Part shown: piece by piece, positions 1-15,457 of the stretch
How positions within the stretch are numbered: the stretch's first letter is position 1
Layout of the letters: the number at the start of each line of letters is the position of its first letter
NCBI GenBank assembly: GCA_048772705.1
Contig: JBLWGC010000166.1
Coordinates: forward strand, 1-15,498
Length of the DNA: 15,498 bases
Direction of reading: 5' to 3'
DNA from: Leidyana gryllorum EB-2025a
Lineage: Eukaryota; Protista; Apicomplexa
Position numbers and translations under genes: made by a program
Notes under the pieces: model-generated
Databases searched by the model: none
What the model saw: the letters and a program-made list of their open reading frames with translations, nothing else
What the model was told of the DNA's origin: nothing

Positions 1-68
1 TCGGTCTAGTGGTATGATCCTTCCTTAGGGGGTGGAAGGAGTCCTGGGTTCGATTCCTAAAACAGCCT
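1..68 (+). pseudogene. tRNA-Pro(AGG)-like, cut by window edge, expanded anticodon loop
   Basis: Matches Pro body at 14375-14446; loop reads TTAGGGGGT; T-stem mismatch. Confidence 0.75.
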
Positions 69-156
69 TTTTGCTAGCCGCTGACGAGGGTCTGGGAGAG
101 TTGATACACGCATCCCCTGTCTCAAATACGATAACGAGTCCGCCTACCACGTCACT

Positions 157-191
157 CGACAGCTGCTAGATTCGAACCAGTGGGGCCAGGC
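157..191 (-). pseudogene. tRNA-Ser 3'-half remnant
   Basis: cgacagctgctagattcgaaccag resembles Ser copies (4845, 10126), including the flank. Confidence 0.55.
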
Positions 192-236
192 GATACTGAC
201 GACTCAGGTGTTTAAGACAGTGAGGCTGTGGGTTGT

Positions 237-309
237 GCGGTGGTGGCGCAATGGATAGCGTGTTGCCCTCCGGAGGCAAAGGTTGTGGGTTCGAGTCCCG
301 CCCACCGTT
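237..309 (+). tRNA. trnR: tRNA-Arg(CCG)
   Basis: Full cloverleaf GCGGTGG/CCACCGT; anticodon arm TTGCC-CTCCGGA-GGCAA; GGTTCGAGTCC. Confidence 0.93.
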
Positions 310-344
310 CTCGTAGTCCCGCTCAACCGTGGAATCGAGAAGAG

Positions 345-420
345 TGGCTGCCATTCGGAGCCGTGCAGACTTGCGCCATCCAAACTCAAGTTTGGCACCG
401 CAGGCCACCGCGATCTGTGC
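345..420 (-). pseudogene. tRNA-Leu remnant (body of 12489-12572)
   Basis: Shares tgcagacttgcgcc and atctgtgc with the reverse complement of Leu(CAA) at 12489. Confidence 0.6.
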
Positions 421-627
421 CGCAGTGTTGAGCTTGAGGGCTCGAAGTGCCACTGTTGAGGAACCGAGGCTGGAAAAGTTCACTTGGGTTTAGCGGATAG
501 GCGGCTATCCCAAGTGCCAGAGAGGTGACTTTGCAGGCCAAATGTGCGGGGGTCGATACCAGGTCGGGGAGCTCTCGAAAAAAGACGCCTGTGAATCATT
601 TCTATAAGTGTGTCCCCCTGCGGGCGC

Positions 628-710
628 TCACCAGTGCGTCGTTTCGATCGACGGAACTTTGGGTCATGAGCCCAACACTCTCCTCGTGTCTCTCTGAGTG
701 CTACAGCCTC
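628..710 (-). pseudogene. initiator tRNA-Met pseudogene
   Basis: GATCGAAA T-loop and TGGG-CTCATGA-CCCA arm; D-arm/acceptor disrupted; homologous to 12859-12930. Confidence 0.75.
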
Positions 711-726
711 TGTCGATCTTTCGACT

Positions 727-796
727 GCACTTGTGGTCTGACGGCAAAATGCGACCGTGCTGAGGTCGTAACGCGGACTGAGTTCCCGCAGGTGCA
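727..796 (+). pseudogene. tRNA-Gly(TCC)-derived pseudogene
   Basis: Acceptor and downstream flank match 3509-3579; anticodon and T loops degenerate. Confidence 0.7.
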
Positions 797-1005
797 GCCG
801 TATGCAAGTCGGACGACCTGTCTATCGATCTCATCTGGCATGTCAATGAGCACTCTACTCTTTGAGCTAGGGGTCTCCAGCTTAGAAGAGCTATTGCATG
901 CCCTGCTTGATGAGTGGACGATTGCCCGTTGAGAATCTGCGGAACGCTGCTGGCAAGCTCGGGTCGCACGGCTGTGAGGGATGACACCAAATGTCACAAC
1001 CTCTC

Positions 1006-1078
1006 TGCCTCGGCCGTGGATCGAACACGGGACTTCCAGATCTTCAGTCTGGCGCTCTCCCAACTGAGCTACCGAGGC
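1006..1078 (-). tRNA. trnF: tRNA-Phe(GAA)
   Basis: GCCTCGGTAGCTCAGTTGGGAGAGCGCCAGACTGAAGATCTGG...CCGAGGCA; intact cloverleaf. Confidence 0.96.
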
Positions 1079-1193
1079 GGTAGGTAGTCACGGAAGGCGG
1101 TGAGGATGAGCACCTCCCGCGGCCGTATGTGGGGCCACTGCCCGCTCAAAATGCGAGGACTTCTGGGGTTGGAGGCGGGCGTGTTTACTAGCG

Positions 1194-1264
1194 TCCGAGA
1201 TAGTATAGTGGTCAGTATTCCGCCTGTCACGCGGAAGACCCGGGTTCGATTCCCGGTCTCGAAA
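1194..1264 (+). tRNA. trnD: tRNA-Asp(GTC), damaged copy
   Basis: 1-nt deletion and acceptor mismatch relative to 14166-14237. Confidence 0.7.
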
Positions 1265-1319
1265 CGCAGGTGGTTTCGCTTAAGATTCTCTGCTTCGGTT
1301 CTCGCTGAAAGTTGCGAGC

Positions 1320-1391
1320 TACAGCCACCGAGGATCGAATTCGGGACTTCTGCGTGCGAAGCAGACGTCGTAACCACTAGACCATTGCTGC
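1320..1391 (-). pseudogene. tRNA-Val body with CGC anticodon
   Basis: Val body as in 5830-5902; loop TT-CGC-AC; 1-nt deletion and stem mismatches. Confidence 0.75.
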
Positions 1392-1454
1392 ACGGATGGT
1401 CCCCGCAGCCCAAGACATGGTCGAAGTTTCAGGGAGTAGTGAGGACCAGTTCCA

Positions 1455-1525
1455 AGGTCGCGCCGCGAATCGAACCCAGGTCGGGAGATTCAGAGTCTCC
1501 AGTGCTAACCACTCACCACGCAACC
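1455..1525 (-). tRNA. trnQ: tRNA-Gln(CTG), damaged copy
   Basis: GGAGA-CTCTGAA-TCTCC; 1-nt D-arm deletion and T-stem mismatch. Confidence 0.7.
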
Positions 1526-1710
1526 GCTTCAGCCCATCCCAGAAGAGTCGGTAGAACTATCCGGACTAGCCCTTTCTCAAATGAACACACGCAACACGAG
1601 TCTCTCTACTGACCGCTGAAATAATTAACTGGCTCCTGTACATAGCGCCCAGCGTAGAGCGCTCTATTTGAGTCGGACAATCATTGAAGCACGCTCTCCG
1701 CGAATGCTAC

Positions 1711-1792
1711 CGACAAGGGTGAGATTCGAACTCACGCGGGTGAAACCCAACGGCTTAGCAGGCCGCCGCCTTAACCGCTCGGCCACCTTGCC
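1711..1792 (-). tRNA. trnS: tRNA-Ser(GCT)
   Basis: 82 nt with long variable arm GGGTTTCACCC; GCGGC-CTGCTAA-GCCGT; discriminator G. Confidence 0.95.
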
Positions 1793-1825
1793 GAGAGTGT
1801 AACTGATTACATCTTCCCTCGGGAA

Positions 1826-1883
1826 GGAAACGAATCGGCGACCTTTCGCTTACTAAGCGAATGGTCCCCTAAGCTAAGAAGGC
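1826..1883 (-). pseudogene. tRNA-Thr(AGT) pseudogene
   Basis: Matches 12980-13051 but with D-arm deletion and lost 3' acceptor strand. Confidence 0.75.
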
Positions 1884-1951
1884 AATACAGGCCGAAGATC
1901 ACGAATCAGTCACTGTTGACGGGGATTACTGGAGCACTTCGCTCAAGTAGC

Positions 1952-2024
1952 TTCCACTGCCGGGACTTGAACCCGGATCATGCGGGTGAGAGCCGCATAT
2001 CCTAGCCACTTAGACTACAGTGGA
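1952..2024 (-). tRNA. trnE: tRNA-Glu(CTC)
   Basis: TCCACTG/CAGTGGA; TGCGG-CTCTCAC-CCGCA; intact. Confidence 0.93.
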
Positions 2025-2120
2025 CAAGTCACTGAGCCGCAGCTTTGGCCGAGAGCCGTACCCTCTTCGAAGCACCTCATAGTATGTCAGGGCCCCTGAA
2101 CGCTAGCGGGTCTGCGCAAC

Positions 2121-2193
2121 GGGCGGCTAGCTCAAATGGTAGAGCGCTCGCTTCGCATGCGAGAGGTACTGGGATCGATACCCAGGTCGTCCA
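2121..2193 (+). tRNA. trnA: tRNA-Ala(CGC)
   Basis: G3:T70; CTCGC-TTCGCAT-GCGAG; GGATCGATACC T-arm. Confidence 0.93.
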
Positions 2194-2338
2194 AACTTCG
2201 TACGGGTGCACCCACCGTATTTAAATACTCGAAGTTACGACCTTTGAAGGGCCCAAGACCACATATCACGCAGCGTGTTTGTCATGCGCGAGAGCCGTAT
2301 ACGTAGCCACTGTCTGCGGCATACCGAGTTCGACAGGT

Positions 2339-2420
2339 GGCAACTTGCCCGAGTGGTTAAGGGGGTAGACTCGAAATCTACTGGGCCTGGCCCGCGCTGG
2401 TTCAAATCCAAGAGTTGTCG
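2339..2420 (+). tRNA. trnS: tRNA-Ser(CGA)
   Basis: GTAGA-CTCGAAA-TCTAC; long variable arm; T-stem mismatches. Confidence 0.8.
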
Positions 2421-2496
2421 TGCGACGTGGTTGGAGGGGTGAACACCAACTGAAGCATGTATTTCTGAAATGATGGGAAAACAACAATGTGTCCTC

Positions 2497-2566
2497 TGCA
2501 TCTGCCGGAATCGAACCCGGGTCGTCTCGATGGCAACGAGACATTCTACCACTAGACCACAGATGC
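2497..2566 (-). tRNA. trnG: tRNA-Gly(GCC), 1-nt T-stem deletion
   Basis: Same as 4708-4778 except one missing base in the T-stem. Confidence 0.75.
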
Positions 2567-2621
2567 GTGAGACCTCCATTCCTGACCACCAAGTAATGAG
2601 TCTGGAGCGGGGGATGGTTTT

Positions 2622-2691
2622 GGGCCTATGGCCAACGTACCGCGTCTGACTCCAGATCAGAAGGTTGGGTTTTCGAATCACTATGGGCTCA
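2622..2691 (+). pseudogene. tRNA-Trp(CCA), degenerate D and T arms
   Basis: TCTGA-CTCCAGA-TCAGA intact; D-arm deletions relative to 6978-7049. Confidence 0.75.
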
Positions 2692-2729
2692 ATCAGACTC
2701 TTTTGTTTTTTCCCGTGTGAGGCTCAACC

Positions 2730-2808
2730 TGAAAAGAGTGGGATTTGGACCCACGCCCTTTCGAACTGCGACTTGAATACAGCGCCTAGACCCCTCAGCC
2801 ATCTTATC
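2730..2808 (-). pseudogene. tRNA-Leu (CAA anticodon on CUN-type body), degenerate
   Basis: Homologous to 3359-3438; T-loop TCCAAAT; several mismatches. Confidence 0.7.
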
Positions 2809-3006
2809 AGCTCGGTTCCTGTCCCGCTACTCCAAGCGTTCCCTGTCTGTTGAAGCGAGAATGGAAAAGCTGGGCTCTGAGGTTAGGGCGTGCCTCCGAC
2901 ATGGTATCAAAGTTATATTTCCGCCTGCCACGCCAACGATCGGGTGGGTACCAGCTCTGAACGCATTCATTTCCAATCCCAATGGCTTCATACACTCTTT
3001 TATTTC

Positions 3007-3074
3007 TTGGTCGTGAATGGTTAGCACTGGAGGCTTTGAATCTCCCGAGCTGGGTTCGATTCCCGGCGCGACCT
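3007..3074 (+). pseudogene. tRNA-Gln(TTG), 5' degenerate
   Basis: 3' two-thirds match 5966-6037; 5' acceptor strand lost. Confidence 0.75.
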
Positions 3075-3133
3075 CGCAACTAGTTCTACTTCTTGAAACT
3101 TCGCAACTTCTCTTGTTTCCGCAAAGCTTTCGT

Positions 3134-3206
3134 GAAGTCATGGTCTAGTGGTCACGACGTCTGCTTCACACACAGAAGGTCCCGAGTTCGATCCCAGGTG
3201 GCTGTA
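3134..3206 (+). pseudogene. tRNA-Val(CAC), degenerate
   Basis: Val body; mismatches in acceptor, anticodon and T stems. Confidence 0.7.
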
Positions 3207-3253
3207 GCTCGAATCTTTGAAGTGAGTCCCACCAAAGCGAGGAAACAGGCTCT

Positions 3254-3289
3254 CTCCAAAACAGGGCATCGAACCCGCGTCTTCCGCGT
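3254..3289 (-). pseudogene. tRNA-Asp 3'-half remnant
   Basis: atcgaacccgcgtcttccgcgt matches Asp 3' half, at the Asp position of the Asp-Val-Gln module. Confidence 0.6.
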
Positions 3290-3358
3290 CTTCAACCCTA
3301 AAAGTCTTCCTTCTCGAGAACTTCACGGACAGAAAACCTGTAAAGTGGCGAACGCTCC

Positions 3359-3438
3359 GGCAAGATGGCCGAGTGGTTTAAGGCGCTGTGTTCAGCCCGC
3401 AGTCCGAAAGGGCGTGGGTTCGAATCCCACTCTTGTGA
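3359..3438 (+). tRNA. trnL: tRNA-Leu(CAG)
   Basis: GGCAAGATGGCCGAGTGG; CTGTG-TTCAGCC-CGCAG; variable arm; 1:72 mismatch. Confidence 0.8.
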
Positions 3439-3508
3439 GCCGTTGTATTGTATTGGCACTCAGTCCCCTCACTTCACTGATATACAGGTCGTTCGACCTA
3501 TATACAGC

Positions 3509-3579
3509 TGCACCTGCCGGGACTCGAACCCGGGTTACGACCTTGGAAGGGCCGCATCTTACCCTTAGACCACAAGTGC
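3509..3579 (-). tRNA. trnG: tRNA-Gly(TCC)
   Basis: GCACTTG/CAGGTGC; CGGCC-CTTCCAA-GGTCG; intact T-arm. Confidence 0.92.
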
Positions 3580-3656
3580 AATTGCGAAAAATTTGCAGCA
3601 CCCCGAGAGACTCGGGCGATTTCTGCGTCGAGCTGTCTGCACCCTACTAAAAAAAC

Positions 3657-3712
3657 GGACTGTTCGGGAATCGAATTGAGCACTTCTCCAACTGGAGGAA
3701 TATTATATCACG
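3657..3712 (-). pseudogene. tRNA-Pro remnant
   Basis: ggactgttcgggaatcgaa resembles the Pro 3' end. Confidence 0.45.
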
Positions 3713-3805
3713 AGCACTTCAACTCGACATGCGCAGCAGTGGCCCCCATACAGCTAGCAAGCTTGCCACACGCGTCTCTCTACTGACCTTTGAAATATTG
3801 TAACT

Positions 3806-3878
3806 GACTCTGGTATCTTAGTCGGCAGAGTGTGTGATTGTAAAATGCAAACTCGGAAATCCGGGCTCTGAGGCAACC
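3806..3878 (+). pseudogene. tRNA-Asn-like remnant
   Basis: AGTCGGCAGAGTGTGTG matches the body at 14722-14794; flanks match 6136-6208. Confidence 0.5.
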
Positions 3879-3979
3879 TTCACACATACTGCGGTGCCCG
3901 AGTCTAGCCAAAGGTAAAGGGCACACTTGAAAGCTTTCAACTCTGTAGTAAAAAAGCGGCACTTGCAGACTACGAAGTT

Positions 3980-4052
3980 TGGACGACCTGGGCATTGATC
4001 CCAGTACCTCTCGCATGCTAAGCGAGCGCTCTACCATTTGAGCTAGTCGCCC
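3980..4052 (-). tRNA. trnA: tRNA-Ala(AGC)
   Basis: Intact stems; one T-loop substitution relative to 14534-14606. Confidence 0.88.
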
Positions 4053-4141
4053 TTTGTGCAGACCCCGTCGCATTTTGTTGATTCTCAACATCGTATGACC
4101 ACTCTCGCGACTGTGCTCACCGCGTTGCACGACCGACAGGC

Positions 4142-4169
4142 GGCTGTTTGGTCTAGTGGTATGATTCTT
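4142..4169 (+). pseudogene. tRNA-Pro 5' fragment at a rearrangement junction
   Basis: GGCTGTTTGGTCTAGTGGTATGATTCTT, then switches to the Asp downstream flank. Confidence 0.8.
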
Positions 4170-4186
4170 AAGCGAGATCAACTGTG

Positions 4187-4258
4187 CTCCGAGACCGGGA
4201 ATCGAACCCGGGTCTTCCGCGTGACAGGCGGAAATACTAACCACTATACTATCTCGGA
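4187..4258 (-). tRNA. trnD: tRNA-Asp(GTC)
   Basis: TCCGAGA/TCTCGGA; TCCGC-CTGTCAC-GCGGA; intact. Confidence 0.95.
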
Positions 4259-4351
4259 CGCTCCGAACACACCGGCCTGAAACCCCAAAAGTCCTTCATC
4301 TTGAGATTCCAGGGATAGAAAACGCGTGGAGCGGCGAGCCAACAACATCCC

Positions 4352-4431
4352 GGCAAGGTGACCGAGTGGTCTGAGGCGCTGTGCTCAGACCGGAGTCCGA
4401 AAGGTCGTGGGTTCGAATCCCACTTTTGTCA
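4352..4431 (+). tRNA. trnL: tRNA-Leu(CAG), damaged copy
   Basis: Leu body; D-stem and anticodon-stem mismatches. Confidence 0.65.
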
Positions 4432-4467
4432 GGTTGCGCCCCAAACGGGAAAAACATAGAGTCCGGT

Positions 4468-4535
4468 TGAGCCCACAGTGATTCGAACACCCAACCTTCT
4501 GGGAGTCAGACGCGCTACCGTTGCGCCATAGGCCC
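4468..4535 (-). pseudogene. tRNA-Trp with 4-nt anticodon-arm deletion
   Basis: 68 nt versus 72 nt in intact copies 6978 and 13884. Confidence 0.8.
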
Positions 4536-4564
4536 AAAACCATCCCCCGTTCCAGACTCATTTA

Positions 4565-4627
4565 CCGGCAATCGGCCCGCTTCTTAGGCGTGACATTCGA
4601 AAATAGTAATAACTATGCTATCTCGGA
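4565..4627 (-). pseudogene. tRNA-Asp(GTC) remnant
   Basis: TCCGAGATAGCATAG...GTCACGCC; T-arm and acceptor decayed. Confidence 0.7.
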
Positions 4628-4707
4628 CGCTTTGAACACGCCACGGACATTCCATTCGTTCAGAAAACGGCCGTTACCGTGTACGAGCTTCAACAACAAG
4701 GTGTGAC

Positions 4708-4778
4708 GCATCTGTGGTCTAGTGGTAGAATGTCTCGTTGCCATCGAGACGACCCGGGTTCGATTCCCGGCAGATGCA
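4708..4778 (+). tRNA. trnG: tRNA-Gly(GCC)
   Basis: GCATCTG/CAGATGC; TCTCG-TTGCCAT-CGAGA; intact. Confidence 0.95.
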
Positions 4779-4844
4779 GAGGACACATGGTTGCTTTTCC
4801 ACATTCAGAAATGAGTTGGTGTTTAACCCTCCAACCACATCGCA

Positions 4845-4926
4845 CGACAACTGCTGGATTTGAACCAGCGCGGGCCCGGCCCAGTAGATTTCTAGTCTAC
4901 CCCCTCAACCACTCGGGCAAGTTGCC
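4845..4926 (-). tRNA. trnS: tRNA-Ser(AGA)
   Basis: GTAGA-CTAGAAA-TCTAC; long variable arm. Confidence 0.9.
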
Positions 4927-4974
4927 GCTATCGAGCTTGGCATTTTGCAGCCAGTGGCTTCACATACGGTTCAG

Positions 4975-5048
4975 CACTGCTCGCGCCGGCACGAACCCGC
5001 GGTTCTCCCATCAAACGTCTTGCGCGCCACCGACGGAGTTGGGGCGGC
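4975..5048 (-). pseudogene. tRNA-Lys-derived pseudogene, copy 1
   Basis: 5' half matches Lys 15044-15116; 3' half decayed. Confidence 0.7.
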
Positions 5049-5131
5049 AAGGAACCTCGCGCCGGCACGAACCCGTGGTTCTCCCATCAAACGTCTTGCG
5101 CGCCACCGACGGAGTTGGGGCGGCAAGGAAG
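4980..5131. repeat. 76-bp tandem duplication (2 copies) of the Lys pseudogene
   Basis: 4980-5055 and 5056-5131 are nearly identical; CTCGC occurs at each boundary. Confidence 0.92.
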
Positions 5132-5294
5132 CTCGCCCTGTACCTGAAGAAGGCCCAAGATCCCACGATCAATACAAATGGAATTGGTTACTAAGTCCAA
5201 ATCTGTATGAGAGATCCACTCACTTGATCACGCCGACATTCCATATTTTCCAAGACGGTACGGCTCTCGGGCGAAGCCCCAACTCAACCACTCG

Positions 5295-5365
5295 TCCACT
5301 GTAGTCTAAGTGGCTAGGATATGCGGCCTCACCCGCAAGCTCCGGGCTCAAGTCCGGCAGTGGAA
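5295..5365 (+). pseudogene. tRNA-Glu, degenerate
   Basis: 6-nt anticodon loop; T-loop CTCAAGT; T-stem deletion. Confidence 0.75.
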
Positions 5366-5453
5366 GTCAGTGGTTGAGGTCAGTGGAATACTCGAGCAAA
5401 GTGCCCAGCAATCTCCGTCAATAGTGTCTGATTCGTGATCTTCGGCCTGCATT

Positions 5454-5525
5454 GCCTTCTTAGCTTAGAGGCAGAGCATTCGCTTAGTAATCGAAAGGTC
5501 GACGGTTCGATTCCGGCAGGAGGCT
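5454..5525 (+). tRNA. trnT: tRNA-Thr(AGT), damaged copy
   Basis: Several substitutions relative to 12980-13051. Confidence 0.7.
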
Positions 5526-5702
5526 TCAGTCAGGAGCCCAAACATGGTTGGGATCTCCGCCCGCATTTTCGGACGGCGGCTTGCAGACAGCACTCGACCA
5601 TCTCGCCGAAGTGTTGTTGGCTCGCCGTTCCACCCGTTTCCCGTCCGTGTAATCTCAAAATGCGAGGACTTCTGGGGTTGGAGGCCGGCGTGTTTACTAG
5701 CG

Positions 5703-5774
5703 TCCGAGATAGTATAGTGGTCAGTATTTCCGCCTGTCACGCTGAAAACCCGGGTTCGATTCCCGGTCTCGGAG
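5703..5774 (+). tRNA. trnD: tRNA-Asp(GTC)
   Basis: Full length; one anticodon-stem mismatch. Confidence 0.82.
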
Positions 5775-5829
5775 CACAGTTGGTTTCGCTTAAGATTCTG
5801 TCCTTTGGTTCTCGCTGAAAGTTGCGAGC

Positions 5830-5902
5830 TACAGCCACCGAGGATCGAACTCGGGACCTTCTGCGTGTAAAGCAGACGTCGTAACCACTAGACCATGGCT
5901 GC
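5830..5902 (-). tRNA. trnV: tRNA-Val(TAC)
   Basis: GCAGCCA/TGGCTGT; TCTGC-TTTACAC-GCAGA; intact. Confidence 0.94.
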
Positions 5903-5965
5903 ACGGCAGGTCCCGCAGACCAAAGCAAGTGGGGAGGTTTCACGAAGTAGTGAGGACTAGTTTCA

Positions 5966-6037
5966 AGGTCGCGCCGGGAATCGAACCCAGGTCGGGAGAT
6001 TCAAAGTCTCCAGTGCTCACCACTACACCACGCAACC
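5966..6037 (-). tRNA. trnQ: tRNA-Gln(TTG)
   Basis: GGTTGCG/CGCGACC; GGAGA-CTTTGAA-TCTCC. Confidence 0.92.
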
Positions 6038-6135
6038 GATTTAGCCCTTCTCAAAGAGTTGATAGAGCCATCCGGACTAGAGCTTCCCCACACATGCAAA
6101 ACGGGTTTTTCTACTAACCTCCAAAATATTCAACT

Positions 6136-6208
6136 GGCTCTTGTAGCGCAGTGGGCAAAGCGTGTGATTGTTAAATACTAAGTCGCAGGTCCGCGGTCTC
6201 AGGCACCC
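6136..6208 (+). pseudogene. tRNA-Asn(GTT)-like remnant
   Basis: GCGTGTGATTGTTAAATACTAAGTCGCAGGT resembles 14722-14794 and retains GTT. Confidence 0.6.
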
Positions 6209-6310
6209 TAGACCGTATTGCGATGCCAAAGTCTATCCAAGGGCTACAGGGCACAATCAAAGGCTCTCAACTCGGTAAATACATAGCGGCAGGTGCGGCC
6301 GTACGAAGTT

Positions 6311-6382
6311 TGGACGATCTGGACATCGATCCCATACCTTTCGCATGCTAAGCGAGCGCTCTACCATCTGAGCCAGTCGCCC
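6311..6382 (-). pseudogene. tRNA-Ala(AGC), degenerate
   Basis: 1-nt deletion and multiple mismatches. Confidence 0.75.
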
Positions 6383-6470
6383 GACGTGCAGTCCCCATCG
6401 CATTTATCGGTTGCCAACATAGCATGACCACTCTCTCGACTCTACCCGCGGATTGCACCACCGACCAGTC

Positions 6471-6541
6471 AGCTGTTTGGTCTAGTGGTATATCCTTCCT
6501 TAGGGTGGATTGAGTGCTGGGTTCGATTCCCAGAACAGCCC
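6471..6541 (+). pseudogene. tRNA-Pro(AGG), degenerate
   Basis: Pro body; D-stem and anticodon-stem lesions. Confidence 0.72.
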
Positions 6542-6616
6542 GCTTTGTTGTATCTTGACCCAACCTGCCTGGCAGCATGGTTCTGGGTTCGGGTGATTCT
6601 TCGGAGACAGTCGGGG

Positions 6617-6689
6617 GGGAGTGTAGCGCAGTCGGTAGCGCGTAGGTCTCATAATCCTGAAGTCGAGAGTTCGATCCTCTCCACTCCCA
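6617..6689 (+). tRNA. trnM: elongator tRNA-Met(CAT)
   Basis: GGGAGTG/CACTCCC; TAGGT-CTCATAA-TCCTG (T31:T39); TTCGATC loop. Confidence 0.95.
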
Positions 6690-6949: not shown

Positions 6950-6977
6950 AAATGAGTCTGGAACGGGGGATGCTTTT

Positions 6978-8810: not shown

Positions 8811-8865
8811 GGTCCTCACTACTCCCTGAATTTTCGCCATCTCTTGGGCTGCGGGGACCATTCGT

Positions 8866-8938
8866 GCTGCCACGGTCTAGTGGTCACGACGTCTGCTTCA
8901 CACGCAGAAGGTCCCGAGTTCGATCCTCGGTGGCTGTA
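8866..8938 (+). tRNA. trnV: tRNA-Val(CAC)
   Basis: Full cloverleaf; T8>C and one acceptor mismatch. Confidence 0.78.
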
Positions 8939-8993
8939 GCTCGCAACTTTCAGCGGGAACCAAAGGGGAGAGTTTTAAGCGAAATCAACTGTG

Positions 8994-9065
8994 CTCCGAG
9001 AGCGGAAATCGAACGCGGGTCTTCCGCGTGACAGGCGGAAATACTAACCACTATACTATCTCGGA
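8994..9065 (-). pseudogene. tRNA-Asp(GTC), broken T-stem
   Basis: Three T-stem substitutions relative to 4187-4258. Confidence 0.7.
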
Positions 9066-9136
9066 CGCTCGCAAACACGCCGGCCTTCAGCCTCAGACGT
9101 CTTACCAGTTTCGAGATTCCACGGACAAAAACTGCG

Positions 9137-9185
9137 TCGGACTGCGGCCTTAACACAGCGCCTTAGACCACTCGGCCATCTTGCC
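9137..9185 (-). pseudogene. tRNA-Leu(AAG) 5' part, truncated in the variable arm
   Basis: GGCAAGATGGCCGAGTGGTCTAAGGCGCTGTG-TTAAGGC-CGCAGTCCGA, then a break. Confidence 0.8.
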
Positions 9186-9254
9186 GGAGCGTTCGCCACT
9201 TTACAGGTTTTCTGTCCGTGTAGTTCTCGAGAAGGAAGACTTTTAGGGTTGAAG

Positions 9255-9290
9255 ACGCGGAAGACGCGGGTTCGATGCCCTGTTTTGGAG
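9255..9290 (+). pseudogene. tRNA-Asp 3'-half remnant
   Basis: Inverted copy of 3254-3289. Confidence 0.6.
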
Positions 9291-9337
9291 AGAGCCTGTT
9301 TCCTCGCTTTGGTGGCACTCACTTCAAAGATTCGAGC

Positions 9338-9410
9338 TACAGCCACCTGGGATCGTACTCGGGACCTTCTGCGTGTTAAGCAGACGTAGTAACCACTAGA
9401 CCATGACTGC
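9338..9410 (-). pseudogene. tRNA-Val(AAC), damaged T-arm
   Basis: Loop TT-AAC-AC; T-loop TACGATC. Confidence 0.7.
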
Positions 9411-9469
9411 ACGAAAGCTTTGCGGAAACCAAGAGAAGTTGCGAAGTTTCAAGAAGTAGAACTAGTTGC

Positions 9470-9536
9470 GAGTCGCGCCGGGAATCGAACCCAGCTCGGG
9501 AGATTCAAAACCTGCAGTGCTAACCATTCACGACCA
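9470..9536 (-). pseudogene. tRNA-Gln(TTG) remnant
   Basis: Inverted copy of 3007-3074. Confidence 0.72.
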
Positions 9537-9737
9537 AGAATTAAAAGAGTGTATGAAGCCATTGGGATTGGAAATGAATGCGTTCAGAGCTGGTACCCAC
9601 CCGATCGTTGGCGTGGCAGGCGGAGATATAACTTTGATACCATGTCGGAGGCACGGCCCAACCTCAGAGCCCAGCTTTTCCATTCTCTAGCTTCAACAGA
9701 CAGGGAACGCTTGGAGTAGCGGGACAGGAACCGAGCT

Positions 9738-9816
9738 GATAAGATGGCTGAGGGTCTAAGGCGCTGTATTCAAGTCGCAGTTTGAAAGGGCGTGGGTCCA
9801 AATCCCACTCTTTTCA
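9738..9816 (+). pseudogene. tRNA-Leu (CAA on CUN-type body), degenerate
   Basis: Inverted copy of 2730-2808. Confidence 0.7.
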
Positions 9817-9853
9817 GGTTGAGCCTCACACGGGAAAAACAAAAGAGTCTGAT

Positions 9854-9923
9854 TGAGCCCATAGTGATTCGAAAACCCAACCTTCTGATCTGGAGTCAGA
9901 CGCGGTACGTTGGCCATAGGCCC
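9854..9923 (-). pseudogene. tRNA-Trp(CCA), degenerate
   Basis: Inverted copy of 2622-2691 with the same lesions. Confidence 0.75.
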
Positions 9924-9978
9924 AAAACCATCCCCCGCTCCAGACTCATTACTTGGTGGTCAGGAATGGAGGTGTCAC

Positions 9979-10049
9979 GCATCTGTGGTCTAGTGGTAGA
10001 ATGTCTCATTGCCATCGAGACGACCCGGGTTCGATTCCCGGCAGATGCA
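9979..10049 (+). tRNA. trnG: tRNA-Gly(GCC)
   Basis: Full length; one anticodon-stem mismatch. Confidence 0.87.
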
Positions 10050-10125
10050 GAGGACACATTGTTGTTTTTCCATCATTCCAGAAATTCATGCGTCAGGTGG
10101 TGTTTAACCCTCCAACCACATCGCA

Positions 10126-10207
10126 CGACAACTGCTGGATTTGAACCAGCGCGGGCCCGGCCCAGTAGATTTCTAGTCTACCCCGTTAACCACTCGGGCA
10201 AGTTGCC
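10126..10207 (-). tRNA. trnS: tRNA-Ser(AGA)
   Basis: Full length; one D-stem substitution. Confidence 0.87.
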
Positions 10208-10268
10208 GCTGTCGAACTTGGCATTTTGCGGCCAGTGGCTTCACATACGGTTCAGCAAGCTTTACTAG

Positions 10269-10341
10269 GACTGCTCGCGCCGCCCGAACCCGCGGTTCTC
10301 CCTTCAAAAGTCTTGCGCTCTACCGACGGAGTTGGGGCGGC
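10269..10341 (-). pseudogene. tRNA-Lys-derived pseudogene (TTT-like loop)
   Basis: GTCGGTAGAGCGCAAGACTTTTGA; 3' half decayed. Confidence 0.7.
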
Positions 10342-10439
10342 AAGAAAGCTCGGACTTGGTAACAAATTCCAGTCGTATTGATGGTGGAATCTTTCCGAGT
10401 CGGTTCGGCTCTCGGCCGAAGCCTAAACTCGACCACTTG

Positions 10440-10512
10440 TCCACTGTAGTCTAAGTGGCTAGGATATGCGGCTCTCACCCGCACGATCCGGGTTCAAGTC
10501 CCGGCAGTGGAA
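10440..10512 (+). tRNA. trnE: tRNA-Glu(CTC)
   Basis: Intact cloverleaf. Confidence 0.94.
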
Positions 10513-10588
10513 GTCATTGAAGTACTCGAGCAAAGTGCTCCACTAATCTCCGTCAGTAGCCATCGTTTCGTTATCTCCAACTTACATT

Positions 10589-10660
10589 GCCTTCTTAGCT
10601 TAGGGGCAGAGCGTTTGCTTCGTAAGCGAGAAGTCGCCGGTTCGATTCCGGCAGAAGGCT
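10589..10660 (+). tRNA. trnT: tRNA-Thr(CGT)
   Basis: GCCTTCT/AGAAGGC; loop TT-CGT-AA. Confidence 0.88.
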
Positions 10661-10726
10661 TTGTTGCATCGATAGGCTTAAGAGGAATGGCTGTCGCCAC
10701 GTACAAGATTCACAAGATCGTGTTCT

Positions 10727-10794
10727 GCATCTGTGGTCTAGTGGAAGAGTCCCTCGCTGCCATCGAGATAACCTGTGTGCGATTCCCGACTGCA
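10727..10794 (+). pseudogene. tRNA-Gly(GCC), degenerate
   Basis: T-loop TGCGATT; acceptor deletion. Confidence 0.72.
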
Positions 10795-10838
10795 AAATGG
10801 TAGCATGATGAGTTTGTCGGCGGTTTCGATTCTGACCG

Positions 10839-10911
10839 TGGGAGTGGAGAGGATCGAACTCTCGACTTCAGGATTATGAGACCTACGCGCTACCGACTGC
10901 GCTACACTCCC
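10839..10911 (-). tRNA. trnM: elongator tRNA-Met(CAT)
   Basis: Inverted copy of 6617-6689, identical by eye. Confidence 0.95.
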
Positions 10912-10987
10912 CCTCCGACTTTCTCCGAGGAATCACCTGAACCCAGAACCATGCTGCCAGGCAGGTTGGGTCAAGATACAACAAAGC

Positions 10988-11059
10988 TGGCTGTTCTGGG
11001 AATGGAACCTAGGACTTCTTCCACCCGACGGAAGTATCATACCACTACACCAAACAGCC
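10988..11059 (-). pseudogene. tRNA-Pro(CGG), damaged
   Basis: Pro body with T-loop, D-stem and anticodon-loop substitutions. Confidence 0.7.
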
Positions 11060-11147
11060 GCCTGTCGTTCGTGCAACCCGCTGAAGACAGTTTAAAAAGT
11101 GGTCATCCTATGTTGAGAACCAACAAATGCGATGGGGTCTGCACCAC

Positions 11148-11220
11148 GGGCGACTAGCTCAAATGGTAGAGCGCTCGCTTAGCATGCGAGAGGTACTGGG
11201 ATCGATGCCCAGGTCGTCCA
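11148..11220 (+). tRNA. trnA: tRNA-Ala(AGC)
   Basis: Intact; G3:T70. Confidence 0.94.
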
Positions 11221-11338
11221 AAGTACGTACGGCTGCACGTGGCCGCATTCAGACCCATCGTTACCATCTTTGAAGAGTCGCGAACCACAAGTGCCATTGG
11301 GAGAGCACCGCACTCAATGTCTAGGGTGCATCGGAAGC

Positions 11339-11411
11339 CGGTTCTGTTAGGTTCCGGACCTCCGAGTTTGTCATCAAAAGCCACACGCTCTGCCGACTGA
11401 GCTACAAGACC
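11339..11411 (-). pseudogene. tRNA-Asn-like body, degenerate
   Basis: 5' half GGTCTTGTAGCTCAGTCGGCAGAGCGTGTGGC matches 14722-14794; 3' half decayed. Confidence 0.7.
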
Positions 11412-11445
11412 CATGCGAAAATAGTAACCACTATGTTATCTCGGA
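11412..11445 (-). pseudogene. 5' half of Asp remnant fused directly to the Asn-like copy
   Basis: catgcgaaaatagtaaccactatgttatctcgga matches 13791-13823 (reverse complement). Confidence 0.7.
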
Positions 11446-11525
11446 CGCTCTGAACACGCCACGGACATTCCATTCGTTCAGAAAACGGCCGTTACCGTGT
11501 ACGAGCTTCAACAACAAGGTGTCAC

Positions 11526-11596
11526 GCATCTGTGGTCTAGTGGTAGAATGTCTGGTTGCCATCGAGACGACCCGGGTTCGATTCCCGGCAGATGCA
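11526..11596 (+). tRNA. trnG: tRNA-Gly(GCC)
   Basis: Full length; one anticodon-stem mismatch. Confidence 0.87.
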
Positions 11597-11671
11597 GAGG
11601 ACACATGGTTGTTTTTCCACCATCCAGAAATTCATGCGGGAGTTGGTGTTTAACCCTCCAACCACATCGCA

Positions 11672-11753
11672 CGACAACTGCTGGATTTGAACCAGCGCGG
11701 GCCCGCCCCAGTAGATTTCTAGTCTACCCCCTTAACCACTCGGGCAAGTTGCC
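11672..11753 (-). tRNA. trnS: tRNA-Ser(AGA)
   Basis: Full length with long variable arm. Confidence 0.9.
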
Positions 11754-11801
11754 GCTGTCGAACTTGGCATTTTGCAGCCAGTGGCTTCGCATACGGTTCA
11801 G

Positions 11802-11875
11802 CACTGCTCGCGCCCCCCCGAACCCGCGGTTCTCCCATCAAAAGTCTTGCGCTCTACGGACTGAGCTAGGGCGGC
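11802..11875 (-). pseudogene. tRNA-Lys-derived pseudogene (TTT-like loop)
   Basis: GCCGCCCTAGCTCAGTCCGTAGAGCGCAAGACTTTTGA; 3' half decayed. Confidence 0.75.
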
Positions 11876-11976
11876 AACGAAGCTCTACACTGAGTTACAC
11901 CCTATTTGCCGTTGGGTGGAGCCCTGGATCCGTTCGACCGGTGGAACAATGAGCTTCAGTAACTTCCGTTAACATT

Positions 11977-12047
11977 GCCTTCTTAGCTGGTGGCAGAGCA
12001 TTCGCTTTGTAAGCGAAAGGTCGCCGGTTCGATTCCGGCAGAAGGCT
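11977..12047 (+). tRNA. trnT: tRNA-Thr(TGT)
   Basis: TTCGC-TTTGTAA-GCGAA; 1-nt D-arm deletion. Confidence 0.78.
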
Positions 12048-12140
12048 TTGCTCACGCACTTAAGCTTTTCTGAGTGGTCTCTCAGTCTCGATAAGGATCT
12101 GAGAGGTTTGGAGGGGAATTGCAATGCACTTTAGATTGGT

Positions 12141-12212
12141 TGTCCGAGCCAGGAATCGAGCCGGGGTTTCCACGGCCACAACCTGCTGTCCTAACCACTA
12201 GACGACTCGGAC
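12141..12212 (-). tRNA. trnH: tRNA-His(GTG), possibly damaged
   Basis: GTCCGAG/CTCGGAC; loop TT-GTG-GC; two anticodon-stem mismatches; T54>C. Confidence 0.7.
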
Positions 12213-12313
12213 AAATCTTTGAGCGAGGCTGTAGAGGTAGCGAAGCATCTATCAGGATGGGATGGAACAGGAGCGTCAGACGAACTGCGTTGCAAGAAGT
12301 CCACTGCTCAACT

Positions 12314-12392
12314 TCGGGTGGGACGGAATTTACTCGTGGAATATCTGATGCCACCACTACAGTCAGATACGTTACCATCTAAGCACCCCGGG
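12314..12392 (-). pseudogene. tRNA-Tyr(GTA) pseudogene retaining a 7-nt intron
   Basis: TCTGACTGTAG[TGGTGGC]ATCAGATA; D and T arms decayed. Confidence 0.75.
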
Positions 12393-12488
12393 CCGTGAGA
12401 GTACTTCGGGGCGGCACACCGCAGCCAGAACGACATCGGCGGTCGCAACGGAAGCCATTAACACTTTGGAACTCAGAAGGAAAGTAAT

Positions 12489-12572
12489 GCACAGATGCCC
12501 GAGTGGTCTAAGGGGCCAGACTCAAGTTCTGGTAGGCGCAAGTCTGCATGGGTTCCAATCCCATTCTGTGCA
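12489..12572 (+). tRNA. trnL: tRNA-Leu(CAA), distinct UUR-type body
   Basis: GCACAGA/TCTGTGC; CCAGA-CTCAAGT-TCTGG; variable arm; T-loop TTCCAAT. Confidence 0.88.
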
Positions 12573-12660
12573 ACGGCGATCATCCCGAAAAAAAGCTGGA
12601 AAAGGTCACAGTAGATTCGAATCTCCATTTGTATATCCGGTTGCATGCACCCAAGTATTC

Positions 12661-12717
12661 GGCTGTTGCTCTGCTGGTATAATCCTTCCTCAGAGTGGAA
12701 GGAGTCCTGAACAGCCC
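12661..12717 (+). pseudogene. tRNA-Pro remnant lacking the T-arm
   Basis: GGCTGTT...GAACAGCCC; upstream flank matches 8225-8254. Confidence 0.65.
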
Positions 12718-12858
12718 TATTGGTCGTCGTTTGACTTGACCGGACATGTTGCCCTCAGAACCAACAAAGCCACCTCGTTAGCCCGCTTCGGTAGGGCAGT
12801 CAGGGCAACTAACATCTCGAGGATCACATTTCGGCTACCTCTTCCATGTTGCAGACTG

Positions 12859-12930
12859 AGCAGTGTAGCTCAGTGGAAGAGTGTTAGTCTCATAACGCAA
12901 AGGTCCGTCGATCGAAACGACGCACTGCTA
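12859..12930 (+). tRNA. trnMi: initiator tRNA-Met(CAT), damaged anticodon stem
   Basis: A1:T72; GATCGAAAC T-loop; the three G:C anticodon-stem pairs are lost. Confidence 0.72.
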
Positions 12931-12979
12931 ACTGTGCGCAGAAGGGAAACAGCTATAGAATTGATTGGGTCGTGACCAA

Positions 12980-13051
12980 AGCCTTCTGCCGGAATCGAAC
13001 CGGCGACCTTTCGCTTACTAAGCGAATGCTCTGCCCCTAAGCTAAGAAGGC
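12980..13051 (-). tRNA. trnT: tRNA-Thr(AGT)
   Basis: Intact; TTCGC-TTAGTAA-GCGAA. Confidence 0.94.
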
Positions 13052-13127
13052 AATGCAAGCCAAAGATCACGAGTCAGTCACTATTGACGGAGGTTACTGG
13101 AGCACTTTGCTCGAATGGTCCAATGAC

Positions 13128-13199
13128 TTCCACTGCCGGGACTTGAACCGGATCATGCGGGTGAAAGCCGCATATCCTAGTCACTTAGACTACAGTGGA
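13128..13199 (-). tRNA. trnE: tRNA-Glu(TTC), damaged copy
   Basis: 1-nt T-stem deletion; D-loop GG>GA. Confidence 0.68.
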
Positions 13200-13361
13200 C
13201 GAGTGGTTGAGTTGGGGCTTCGGCCGAGAGCCGTACCGTCTTGGAAAATATGGAATGTCGGCGTGATCAAGTGAGTGGATCTCTGATACAGATTTGGACT
13301 TAGTAACCAATTCCATTTGTATTGATCTTGGGCCTTCCCCAAGTACAGGGCGAGCTTCCTT

Positions 13362-13434
13362 GCCGCCCCAACTCCGTCGGTGGCGCGCAAGACGTTTGAT
13401 GGGAGAACGCGGGTTCGTGCCGGCGCGAGCAGTG
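13362..13434 (+). pseudogene. tRNA-Lys-derived pseudogene
   Basis: Single-copy inverted counterpart of 4975-5131. Confidence 0.7.
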
Positions 13435-13482
13435 CTGAACCGTATGTGAAGCCACTGGCTGCAAAATGCCAAGCTCGACAGC

Positions 13483-13564
13483 GGCAACTTGCCCGAGTGG
13501 TTGAGGGGGTAGACTAGAAATCTACTGGGCCTGGCCCGCTTTGGTTCAAATCCAGCAGTTGTCG
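13483..13564 (+). tRNA. trnS: tRNA-Ser(AGA)
   Basis: Full length; T-stem substitutions. Confidence 0.8.
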
Positions 13565-13639
13565 TGCGATGTGGTTGGAGGGTTAAACATCAACTCACGC
13601 ATGAATTTCTGAATGGTGGAAACGCAACCATGTGTCCTC

Positions 13640-13710
13640 TGCATCTGCCGGGAATCGAACCCGGGCCGTCTCGATGGCAACGAGACATTCTACCATTAGA
13701 CCACAGATGC
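13640..13710 (-). tRNA. trnG: tRNA-Gly(GCC)
   Basis: Intact stems. Confidence 0.9.
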
Positions 13711-13790
13711 GTGACACCTTGTTGTTGAAGCTCGTACACGGTAACGGCCGTTTTCTGAACGAATGGAATGTCCGTGGCGTGTTCAGAGCG

Positions 13791-13855
13791 TCCGAGATAG
13801 CATAGTGGTTACTATTTTCGCATGTCACGCCTAAGAAGCGGGCCCGATTGCCGGT
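13791..13855 (+). pseudogene. tRNA-Asp remnant
   Basis: Same decayed allele as 6885-6949. Confidence 0.7.
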
Positions 13856-13883
13856 AAATGAGTCTGGAACGGGGGATGGTTTT

Positions 13884-13955
13884 GGGCCTATGGCGCAACG
13901 GTAGCGCGTCTGACTCCAGATCAGAAAGTTGGGTGTTCGAATCACTCTGGGCTCA
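13884..13955 (+). tRNA. trnW: tRNA-Trp(CCA)
   Basis: Intact cloverleaf. Confidence 0.93.
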
Positions 13956-13991
13956 ACCGGACTCTATGTTTTTCCCGTTTGGGGCGCAACC

Positions 13992-14071
13992 TGACAAAAG
14001 TGGGATTCGAACCCACGACCTTTCGGACTGCGGTCTGAGCACAGCGCCTCAGACCACTCGGTCATCTTGCC
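13992..14071 (-). tRNA. trnL: tRNA-Leu(CAG)
   Basis: CTGTG-CTCAGAC-CGCAG; inverted copy of 4352-4431; some mismatches. Confidence 0.75.
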
Positions 14072-14165
14072 GGGATGTTGTTGGCTCGCCGCCCCAAGCG
14101 TTTTCTATCCCTTGAATCTCAAGATGGAAGGACTTTTGGGGTTTCAGGCCGGTGTGTTCGGAGCG

Positions 14166-14237
14166 TCCGAGATAGTATAGTGGTTAGTATTTCCGCCTGT
14201 CACGCGGAAGACCCGGGTTCGATTCCCGGTCTCGGAG
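14166..14237 (+). tRNA. trnD: tRNA-Asp(GTC)
   Basis: Intact; matches 4187-4258. Confidence 0.95.
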
Positions 14238-14374
14238 CAGTTCCAGCCCTCACAACTGGTGCAACTCAGATTTTGTCGCAGCTGGTCTGGACTTCATTCG
14301 GGATTGTACGAGTGGGAGCCGCGTATAGAAGCCGACCTTGGAGGGACGTGGCATTGAGTCAACAACTATCAGAC

Positions 14375-14446
14375 GGGCTGTTCTGGGAATCGAACCCAGG
14401 ACTTCTTCCACCCGAAGGAAGAATCATACCACTAGACCAAACAGCC
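14375..14446 (-). tRNA. trnP: tRNA-Pro(CGG)
   Basis: GGCTGTT/AACAGCC; intact. Confidence 0.95.
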
Positions 14447-14533
14447 GGCTGTCGGTCGAGCAACCCGCTGAGTACAGTCGAGAGAGTGGTCATACGATGT
14501 TGAGAACAAAAAAATCGATGGGGTCTGCGCAAC

Positions 14534-14606
14534 GGGCGACTAGCTCAAATGGTAGAGCGCTCGCTTAGCATGCGAGAGGTACTGGGATCGATGCCCAGGT
14601 CGTCCA
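14534..14606 (+). tRNA. trnA: tRNA-Ala(AGC)
   Basis: Intact; matches 11148-11220. Confidence 0.94.
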
Positions 14607-14721
14607 AAGTTCGTACGGCTGCACGTGGCGGGATCCAAACAAACTTCCATCTTTGAAGAGTCGCAGACCACAAGTGCCATTGGCACACCAGCGCACTCAG
14701 TGTTTAGTGTGCCTCTGAAAC

Positions 14722-14794
14722 CGGTCCTGGAAGGTTTCGAACCTGCGACTTTGTGGTTAGCAGCCACACGCTCTGCCGACTGAGCTACGAGACC
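14722..14794 (-). tRNA. Asn-like short-variable-loop tRNA with GCT anticodon
   Basis: TGTGG-CTGCTAA-CCACA; G73; no long variable arm; two stem mismatches. Confidence 0.72.
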
Positions 14795-14910
14795 CAGCTA
14801 CAATGGTTCAGAGGTTAGTATAGAGATCCTTCTTTTTCTACCACAGGATTCTGCAACCACGTCTTGTCAAGAGGTACGGCTCTCGGCTAAAGCTGCAGCT
14901 GAGGAAGTTG

Positions 14911-14983
14911 TCCACTTTAGTCTAAGTGGCTAGGATATGCGGCTTTCACCCGCACGATCCGGGTTCAAGTCCCGGCAGTGGAA
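14911..14983 (+). tRNA. trnE: tRNA-Glu(TTC)
   Basis: Full length; 7:66 mismatch. Confidence 0.87.
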
Positions 14984-15043
14984 ATCCAGCTGAGTGTGCT
15001 TGTAGGCAACAGTTCCATTCTTACTCCCAGGGAAACAGATGCA

Positions 15044-15116
15044 CACCGCCCGCGGGGCTCGAACCCGCGACTGCAAGATTAAGAGTCTTGCGCTCTACCG
15101 ACTGAGCTAGGGCGGC
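15044..15116 (-). tRNA. trnK: tRNA-Lys(CTT)
   Basis: GCCGCCC/GGGCGGT; CAAGA-CTCTTAA-TCTTG; intact. Confidence 0.95.
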
Positions 15117-15384
15117 AGGAATGCAAGGACAAAAAACCCGATAGCCCGACATCTTAAGTGGCTTTGGTACCCACCAGCCTCACTTGAAGATTGTCCGGGT
15201 CGTCTAGGTGCTTACAACAGCAAGTTGTGGCCGTGCATACCCAGCCCCGAATCCTGGCTTGGATAGTATGTCCCCGATGTCTGAATGGGAGATGTGGGCG
15301 AAGTCTGTCCACACCCACCATCGGGCGTAGCTGCCCATGTCCTGTCTTGATCGCTACACACTCCCATTTGACGGCTCCGCTGGT

Positions 15385-15457
15385 GGCGCCATGGCCTAAT
15401 GGATATGGCATCGGTCTTCGGAACCGGGAGTTGTGGGTTCGAGTCCCATCCGCATCA
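15385..15457 (+). pseudogene. tRNA-Arg(TCG) with poorly paired acceptor stem
   Basis: TCGGT-CTTCGGA-ACCGG; good T-arm; acceptor GGCGCCA/CCGCATC has three mismatches. Confidence 0.65.

Follow-up and report, generated by a model that had tools for sequence, protein, structure and literature searches.

The window analysed here is the entire contig C166 (JBLWGC010000166.1, 15,498 nt) of the Leidyana gryllorum EB-2025a assembly (15.5 Mb, 237 contigs), and it is one fragment of a genome-wide field of tRNA genes. We assign a probability of about 0.62 to the reading, drawn from sequence, that this field is the organism's main source of tRNA: an amplified cluster in birth-and-death turnover, in which recombination would take place in the tRNA bodies, selection would act on gene dose and transcription would read through to distant or weak terminators.

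When the organism's own modal tRNA sequences (the commonest sequence per tRNA family across 240 kb of array DNA) were mapped back to the window, 105 tRNA-derived loci were found, spanning 46% of the bases, with 50 loci on the plus and 55 on the minus strand. Five shuffled versions of the window gave 0 hits. The loci belong to 18 amino-acid families; no Cys or Ile locus was found in the window by this mapping. These figures bear out the first-pass annotation, made from the letters of the window alone, which had described about 100 tRNA loci in 15.5 kb, about half of the DNA as tRNA-derived, 18 families and the use of both strands. ARAGORN called 62 tRNA genes, and Rfam RF00005 detected 67 at the gathering score and ~75 at E<10; Rfam scores reached 68 bits, and the cloverleaf with its internal A and B boxes was present. 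The earlier estimate that about half of the copies are damaged was correct as to the damage but, if anything, too low: only 36 of the 105 loci are full-length with no more than 2 differences from the modal gene, whereas 50 are full-length with 3 or more differences and 19 are fragmentary. The first locus (3-67) is truncated by the left edge and the last one ends at 15458, as expected from the earlier remark that the array runs past the left edge and has a locus near the right edge. Since the window is an entire contig, both edges are assembly breaks within the array.

The field extends far beyond this contig. A search of the genome with Rfam returned ~11,600 rough tRNA candidates, stretches sampled from six other contigs were all tRNA-filled (~4 ARAGORN calls per kb), and contigs as long as 90 kb were tRNA-filled in each sampled stretch. 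An exact B-box 12-mer occurred 2,292 times genome-wide, compared to 2 occurrences of the control. Its density in sampled array DNA (225 in 228 kb) gives a field of ~2.3 Mb, or ~15% of the assembly, an estimate that may contain haplotype duplication or collapse; Trp and Ser arm patterns, with small counts, gave 2.8 and 3.0 Mb. Extrapolation from a sample of ~10% of the field yields ~15,000 loci in total, ~9,400 ARAGORN-callable and ~2,800 identical to the mode. Field DNA occupies dozens of contigs at a density of 6.4 loci per kb, all 20 amino acids are mixed within one field, and 923 of 1,545 sampled loci (~60%) are damaged or fragmentary. On the 295-kb gene contig C2 array DNA makes up the initial ~4 kb, and on contig C43 (>351 kb) it runs from the start to at least 135 kb; being contiguous with gene arms on these two contigs, the field is chromosomal. 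The dedicated tRNA domain in turnover that had been proposed from the window is thus supported, but its scale and its host had been missed, and the exchange at tRNA bodies, the signs of a working supply and the lack of terminators described below go beyond that proposal. The host is probably a gregarine, judged from one gene: the nearest relatives of its cytosolic HSP70 are those of Gregarina niphandrodes and Protomagalhaensia (77%), with which it also groups in the HSP70 tree (support 94/92). Tandem families of divergent HSP70-like genes (~40 matches) are found on contigs C230, C104 and C2.

Tandem Repeats Finder (TRF) detected a single tandem duplication of 76 bp in the window, which means that there is no regular repeat unit, and it found no short tandem repeats in the spacers of the window. 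Almost every base of the window (99.8%) has a paralogue elsewhere in the field; positions 4834-5620, for instance, are 99.4% identical to contig C217. Damaged copies recur as well. Of 69 damaged window loci, 48 resemble a copy from another contig more closely than they resemble the intact gene, and an exact twin exists elsewhere for 16 of the 69, with a tenth of the domain sampled. The dead Tyr gene in the 11977-13199 block differs at 16 positions from the modal sequence and at 1 from a copy on another contig. These comparisons between copies indicate that the lesions are inherited and are not consensus errors. Consensus error was rejected as a source of the lesions on these grounds, and a simple tandem unit or short-tandem-repeat spacers on the grounds of the single duplication and of the 216 junction types described below. 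A low-accuracy consensus of a simple tandem unit, which the first-pass annotation had named as the finding that would overturn it, is therefore not what the data show. Decay by methylation or of the repeat-induced point mutation type was also rejected (CpG observed/expected 0.91, balanced mutation spectrum).

The order of the genes is scrambled but not random. The 1,524 neighbour junctions examined fall into 216 end-pair types, whereas 761 would be expected for random order, and 109 of the types account for 91% of the junctions. The spacers form ~93 families, totalling 8.7 kb, each of them mostly tied to one pair of tRNA ends. With its vocabulary of ~45 tRNA bodies, the field can be read as a path through a small graph in which the bodies are the nodes and the spacers the edges. 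Duplicated blocks measure 0.3-4.4 kb and are direct and inverted in equal proportion (36:37), and the biggest internal repeats of the window are two inverted pairs, 95% and 96% identical (Table 1). Block duplication, inversion and decay support the earlier description of a mosaic of reshuffled modules growing by segmental duplication. A tRNA-derived short interspersed element was ruled out in view of the ~45 different bodies, the fixed neighbours, the copying of multi-gene blocks and the near absence from gene arms.

The four-gamete test was positive in eight tRNA families (Ala, Pro, Glu, Thr, Ser, Gly, Val and Asn): each of the four possible pairings of two upstream with two downstream flank families was found, mostly on several contigs, and the flank families compared show 52-71% identity, against a background of 54%. 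The occurrence of all four pairings points to exchange within the tRNA body. Ends of long alignments are enriched at tRNA edges (30-36% vs 14%) and depleted inside tRNA bodies (9-12% vs 36%), though over half of them still lie in spacers.

It could be argued that the order or the size of the mosaic is largely an artefact of assembly, arising from chimeric paths through identical bodies or from haplotypes of pooled parasites that were assembled apart. A graph with tRNA nodes is indeed terrain in which a short-read assembler could wander, the field is split over many contigs, and the sample may be a population. We find this very improbable, because in 33 kb of young duplicates 237 substitutions were counted but only 30 indels and 5 homopolymer slips, because the 48 lesions mentioned above recur on other contigs and the minor flank combinations are mostly found on several contigs, and because 4-kb duplicates lie within single contigs, with none longer between contigs. 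The same assembly contains gene contigs of up to 1.7 Mb.

Divergence of the bodies is 0.39-0.49 of that of the flanks, and 25% of the bodies but only 4% of the flanks are equal to the mode; intact and dead bodies have equally diverged flanks. Most isoacceptors are separated by just 1-4 nt. In the sequences compared, this pattern fits conversion between bodies combined with selection on total dose. Copy number correlates with codon use (rho 0.70 over 45 anticodons), and Leu-TAG, which reads the rare CTA codon, is present in just 14 copies. Complete lists of exact anticodon-arm matches contained 66 entries for Ser-TGA, 80 for Gln-TTG and 14 for Leu-TAG; none of these lay on large gene arms, with a few small contigs in the lists unclassified and with solitary genes of variant sequence beyond the reach of exact-match searches.

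Intact array genes lack a nearby terminator. A run of four T residues (T4) follows within 15 nt in 3% of 463 intact copies, the same as the background of 3%, and within 30 nt in 9.5% compared to 6.4%; the first T4 is at a median distance of 333 nt. Most of the single Asp genes of the same type found in metagenomes have an immediate T-run. By analogy with the human genes discussed below, read-through to distant or weak terminators, followed by trimming by RNase P and RNase Z, would be the likeliest mode of expression. Two La-motif proteins were detected (C185:101530 and C109:205345); a U-tail-binding factor may thus persist despite the terminator-less array genes.

A number of observations weigh against the field as the main tRNA source. 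In the youngest duplicates body divergence is 0.92 of that of the spacers, and the mutations that survive spare the anticodon and the B-box hardly at all: among copies that carry no more than 8 differences, the number of mutations per site was 0.032 at invariant B-box positions, 0.034 at G18/G19 and 0.032 at unconstrained positions. Taken together, these values mean that direct selection on the copies is weak or absent, and that individual copies are free to decay, with bodies being reset or replaced on a longer time scale. The near-complete genome list of sites with a B-box followed by a run of five T residues (T5) contains two confirmed solitary genes, plus a few candidates. Both confirmed genes, Cys-GCA (C104:807061-807133) and Gln-CTG (C202:192629-192696), are located on gene arms and end in a T5 terminator, unlike their array counterparts, which shows that T-run termination survives in the lineage; further solitary genes, of variant sequence or with T4 ends, could have been missed. 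No Leu-TAA gene was found in the genome searches, and TTA codons do occur (10 of 376 sampled Leu codons); the gene may contain an intron, be divergent or unassembled, or be replaced by wobble. A T8-ended candidate on C104 was rejected because it did not fit a tRNA pattern. Finally, the set of codons counted is small (4,590, some of them from unverified open reading frames) and only about a tenth of the field was sampled.

Alternatively, the field might be a mostly silent, tRNA-derived heterochromatic satellite, descended from the working cluster and homogenised by unbiased conversion, the tRNAs being supplied by a small open subset or by the solitary genes. The missing terminators, the site-blind decay, the near-neutral divergence of young duplicates, the solitary terminated Cys and Gln genes, and the chromodomain long terminal repeat (LTR) element and solo LTRs lying within the arrays would all be compatible with such a satellite. 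We nevertheless hold it to be unlikely: Ser-TGA, Gln-TTG and Leu-TAG have no exact arm match on large gene arms, a near-complete genome list yielded only two confirmed solitary T5 genes and a few candidates, copy number follows codon use, and the bodies are conserved across species next to unrelated spacers.

The first-pass annotation had suggested that dead copies are kept for the loading of TFIIIC or condensin. The mutation rates given above do not support this, as B-box and G18/G19 positions are mutated as often as free sites, and dead copies that do not retain their B-boxes argue against retention for TFIIIC loading. The wider proposal that the field also or mainly serves chromosome structure, as a centromere, a telomere substitute or a boundary, and that its size was selected for that task, meets with the same objection, which includes the A-box residues. 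In its favour, arrays are found at the contig ends of gene arms (C2, C43), chromodomain retroelements insert in the field, and a repeat-pattern search found no TTAGG-type telomere array in the assembly, although such repeats are often missing from assemblies. Assemblies break at any long repeat, so that a position at contig ends is uninformative on chromosome location. On balance a structural role seems quite improbable, more so than a silent satellite.

If the field is the main tRNA source, the following scenario would account for it. A compact ancestral cluster, of the order of 10-15 kb, would have been amplified ~150-200-fold by ectopic recombination or template switching between near-identical, oppositely oriented bodies, the trigger probably being replication-fork trouble at dense RNA polymerase III (Pol III) genes. 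Exchange mediated by the bodies would both scramble the order and reset the bodies to the majority sequence. Selection would act on the total dose of every working tRNA and not on individual copies, so that dead copies would be tolerated rather than kept. Internal A and B boxes would direct Pol III transcription of the intact genes up to a distant or weak T-run, and the tRNAs would be excised from the read-through transcripts by RNase P and RNase Z. In a bolder version, nearly the whole tRNA supply would be encoded in a self-shuffling, terminator-less megabase field and released from long read-through precursors of both strands, and the field might double as centromeric or chromosome-end chromatin. 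This version is possible, though we would sooner expect it to fail than to hold; if true, the processing of long two-strand precursors would be a mode of tRNA expression undescribed in eukaryotes.

The layout of the window is summarized in Table 1.

Table 1. tRNA-derived loci and modules along the window (plus and minus signs after the amino acids indicate the strand)
Position	Content	Remarks
1-15498	Whole contig: fragment of genome-wide tRNA field, 105 loci	
3-870	Largely decayed block: Pro+ (cut by edge), Ser fragment, intact Arg-CCG (237-310), dead Leu, Ala, Met, Gly, Ala	
1006-2193	Phe- (modal, 1006-1078); module Asp+ Val- Gln- (1194-1525); Ser- Thr- Glu- Ala+	
2292-3436	Module Ser+ Gly- Trp+ Leu- Asp+ Gln+ Val+ Asp- Leu+	2292-3407 is an inverted copy (95%, 1121 nt) of 9137-10253
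3507-4169	Near-intact Gly-TCC-; Pro and Asn fragments; Ala-AGC-; Pro 5' fragment	
4185-5060	Module Asp- Leu+ Trp- Asp- Gly+ Ser- Lys-	Inverted copy (96%, 891 nt) of 13350-14239
4980-5136	Sole tandem duplication of the window: 76 bp, 2.1 copies, dead Lys copies	TRF
5295-6193	Glu+ Thr+; module Asp+ Val-TAC- Gln-TTG- (5703-6037, Val modal); Asn fragment	
6311-7115	Ala- Pro+ Met+ (modal, 6617-6689) Gly- Asp+ Trp+ (modal, 6977-7052) Gly-	
7170-9131	Twelve-gene block Thr- Glu- Arg- Ala- Pro+ Glu+ Lys- Pro+ Tyr- Gln+ Val+ Asp-	Collinear with contig C113 (1967 nt, 95%)
9137-10253	Module Leu- Asp+ Val- Gln- Leu+ Trp- Gly+ Ser-	Inverted partner of 2292-3407
10270-11411	Lys- Glu+ Thr+ Gly+ Met- Pro- Ala+ Asn-	9970-11241 matches C174 and C5 at 96.6%
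11412-11885	Third copy of module Asp- Gly+ Ser- Lys-	93-94% to 4594-5058 and 13352-13824
11977-13199	Thr+ His- Tyr- (dead) Leu-CAA+ Pro+ Met+ Thr- Glu-	
13350-14239	Module Lys+ Ser+ Gly- Asp+ Trp+ Leu- Asp+	Inverted partner of 4185-5060
14375-15458	Pro- Ala+ Asn- Glu+ Lys- His+ Arg-TCG+	Last locus 15384-15458, 40 nt before contig end

Four ARAGORN labels in the window turned out to be anticodon mutants or miscalls of other families. The 'SeC' gene at 7463-7540 is really a mutated Arg-TCT, which lies at 7467-7539 inside the twelve-gene block and has its anticodon changed to TCA, and the 'Ser-GCT' gene at 14722-14794 is a mutated Asn. Selenocysteine and pyrrolysine tRNAs were rejected, since ARAGORN had wrongly given these labels to mutated Arg and Gln copies, and protein-coding content was rejected because the open reading frames of the window are read-throughs of tRNA DNA.

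Foreign DNA was encountered at several places in the sampled arrays. On contig C13 (L036:2981-4000) the 3' end of a chromodomain LTR retroelement reading frame (Pfam Chromo) directly adjoins the array, and B-box matches restart only near C13:10,200, leaving ~7 kb of foreign DNA inside the array. An LTR-like piece on contig C3 (L027:1-851) is 97% identical to the beginning of the reverse-transcriptase-encoding contig C6 and is joined to a Gly-GCC gene exactly at the anticodon. A 302-bp solo LTR (TG...CA) with a 5-bp target duplication is located in a Leu-Ala spacer of contig C113 (L015:5068-5369). Two further inserts of non-array DNA were noted, one splitting an Asn gene at the anticodon loop (L028:1852-2180), the other near the array end of contig C2 (L026:434-1238).

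Such a field offers a natural test of several questions: why giant tRNA arrays exist (dose, chromatin or chromosome structure), whether copy number can track codon use when single copies escape selection, whether recombination has tRNA genes as its nodes, and by what means Pol III genes function when no terminator is close by.

We found no paper on gregarine tRNA arrays in the literature searched. Known apicomplexans have minimal tRNA sets, and ~15,000 loci in 15% of the assembly represent a 40- to 300-fold departure from them. The anticodon set itself, with its A34 isoacceptors, is the ordinary eukaryotic one found in other apicomplexans, whereas the locus and ARAGORN totals given above contrast with published counts of 45 tRNA genes in Plasmodium and Cryptosporidium, 14 in Porospora, 150 in Toxoplasma and 231 in Gregarina niphandrodes (Boisard et al., PMC9250747, Table 1).

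Trypanosomatid tRNA clusters are compact, dense, mixed in type and strand, and made up of intact genes. Dense mixed-strand clusters were also found on metagenome contigs of two more distant eukaryotes, L065 with 24 tRNAs in 3.3 kb and L067 with 13 in 4 kb; they share with the field the mixture of types, the use of both strands and the near-identical isoacceptor bodies, but their genes are intact, nearly all have an immediate T-run, and there is little internal duplication. Compact mixed-strand clusters like these are probably the type of source from which the field arose. A 1.2-kb metagenome contig of a close relative (L060, Ga0116230_10329219) carries six intact tRNAs on mixed strands with bodies 93-100% identical to those of the field, spacers and order unrelated to it, and no immediate T-run in five of the six; bodies in terminator-less clusters are thus conserved between species. 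In humans, tRNA genes without a proximal T4 are transcribed by Pol III up to distant or degenerate terminators, which produces long 3' trailers (Orioli et al., PMC3141230). There, a subset of genes behaves in this way; in the field, the lack of a proximal T4 is the rule.

Nematostella and teleost genomes measure hundreds of megabases, of which tDNA is a tiny fraction. Their heterogeneous tDNA clusters, with >17,000 tRNA genes and pseudogenes, most of them clustered and in fast turnover (Bermudez-Santana et al., PMC2888827), resemble the field in having neighbours of unlike type within 1,000 nt (the gaps between tRNAs in the field have medians of 59-95 nt, with neighbours of mixed type). They differ in that the field packs a similar number into ~15% of a 15.5-Mb assembly, at the density given above and without terminators.

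The closest parallel in scale is Entamoeba, in which almost all tRNA genes, with few dispersed ones, reside in arrays that make up >10% of the genome (Tawari et al., PMC2652664). In both parasites the arrays thus exceed a tenth of a small genome (~2.3 of 15.5 Mb here) and dispersed genes are few. The Entamoeba arrays consist of 25 regular head-to-tail tandem units, each holding 1-5 genes, with short-tandem-repeat spacers (present in E. histolytica and E. dispar), contain no clear pseudogenes, show no relation of copy number to codon usage, and have been proposed to serve chromosome structure, with a possible telomere role (PMC2652664). The field, in contrast, has neither a repeating unit nor such spacers, uses both orientations equally and mixes 20 amino acids; ~60% of its copies are damaged, and its copy numbers track codon use. 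The earlier statement that the array is neither Entamoeba-like nor trypanosomatid-like therefore stands. The field is of Entamoeba scale but not of Entamoeba type, and it appears to represent a second, independent origin of genome-scale tRNA arrays, differently built.

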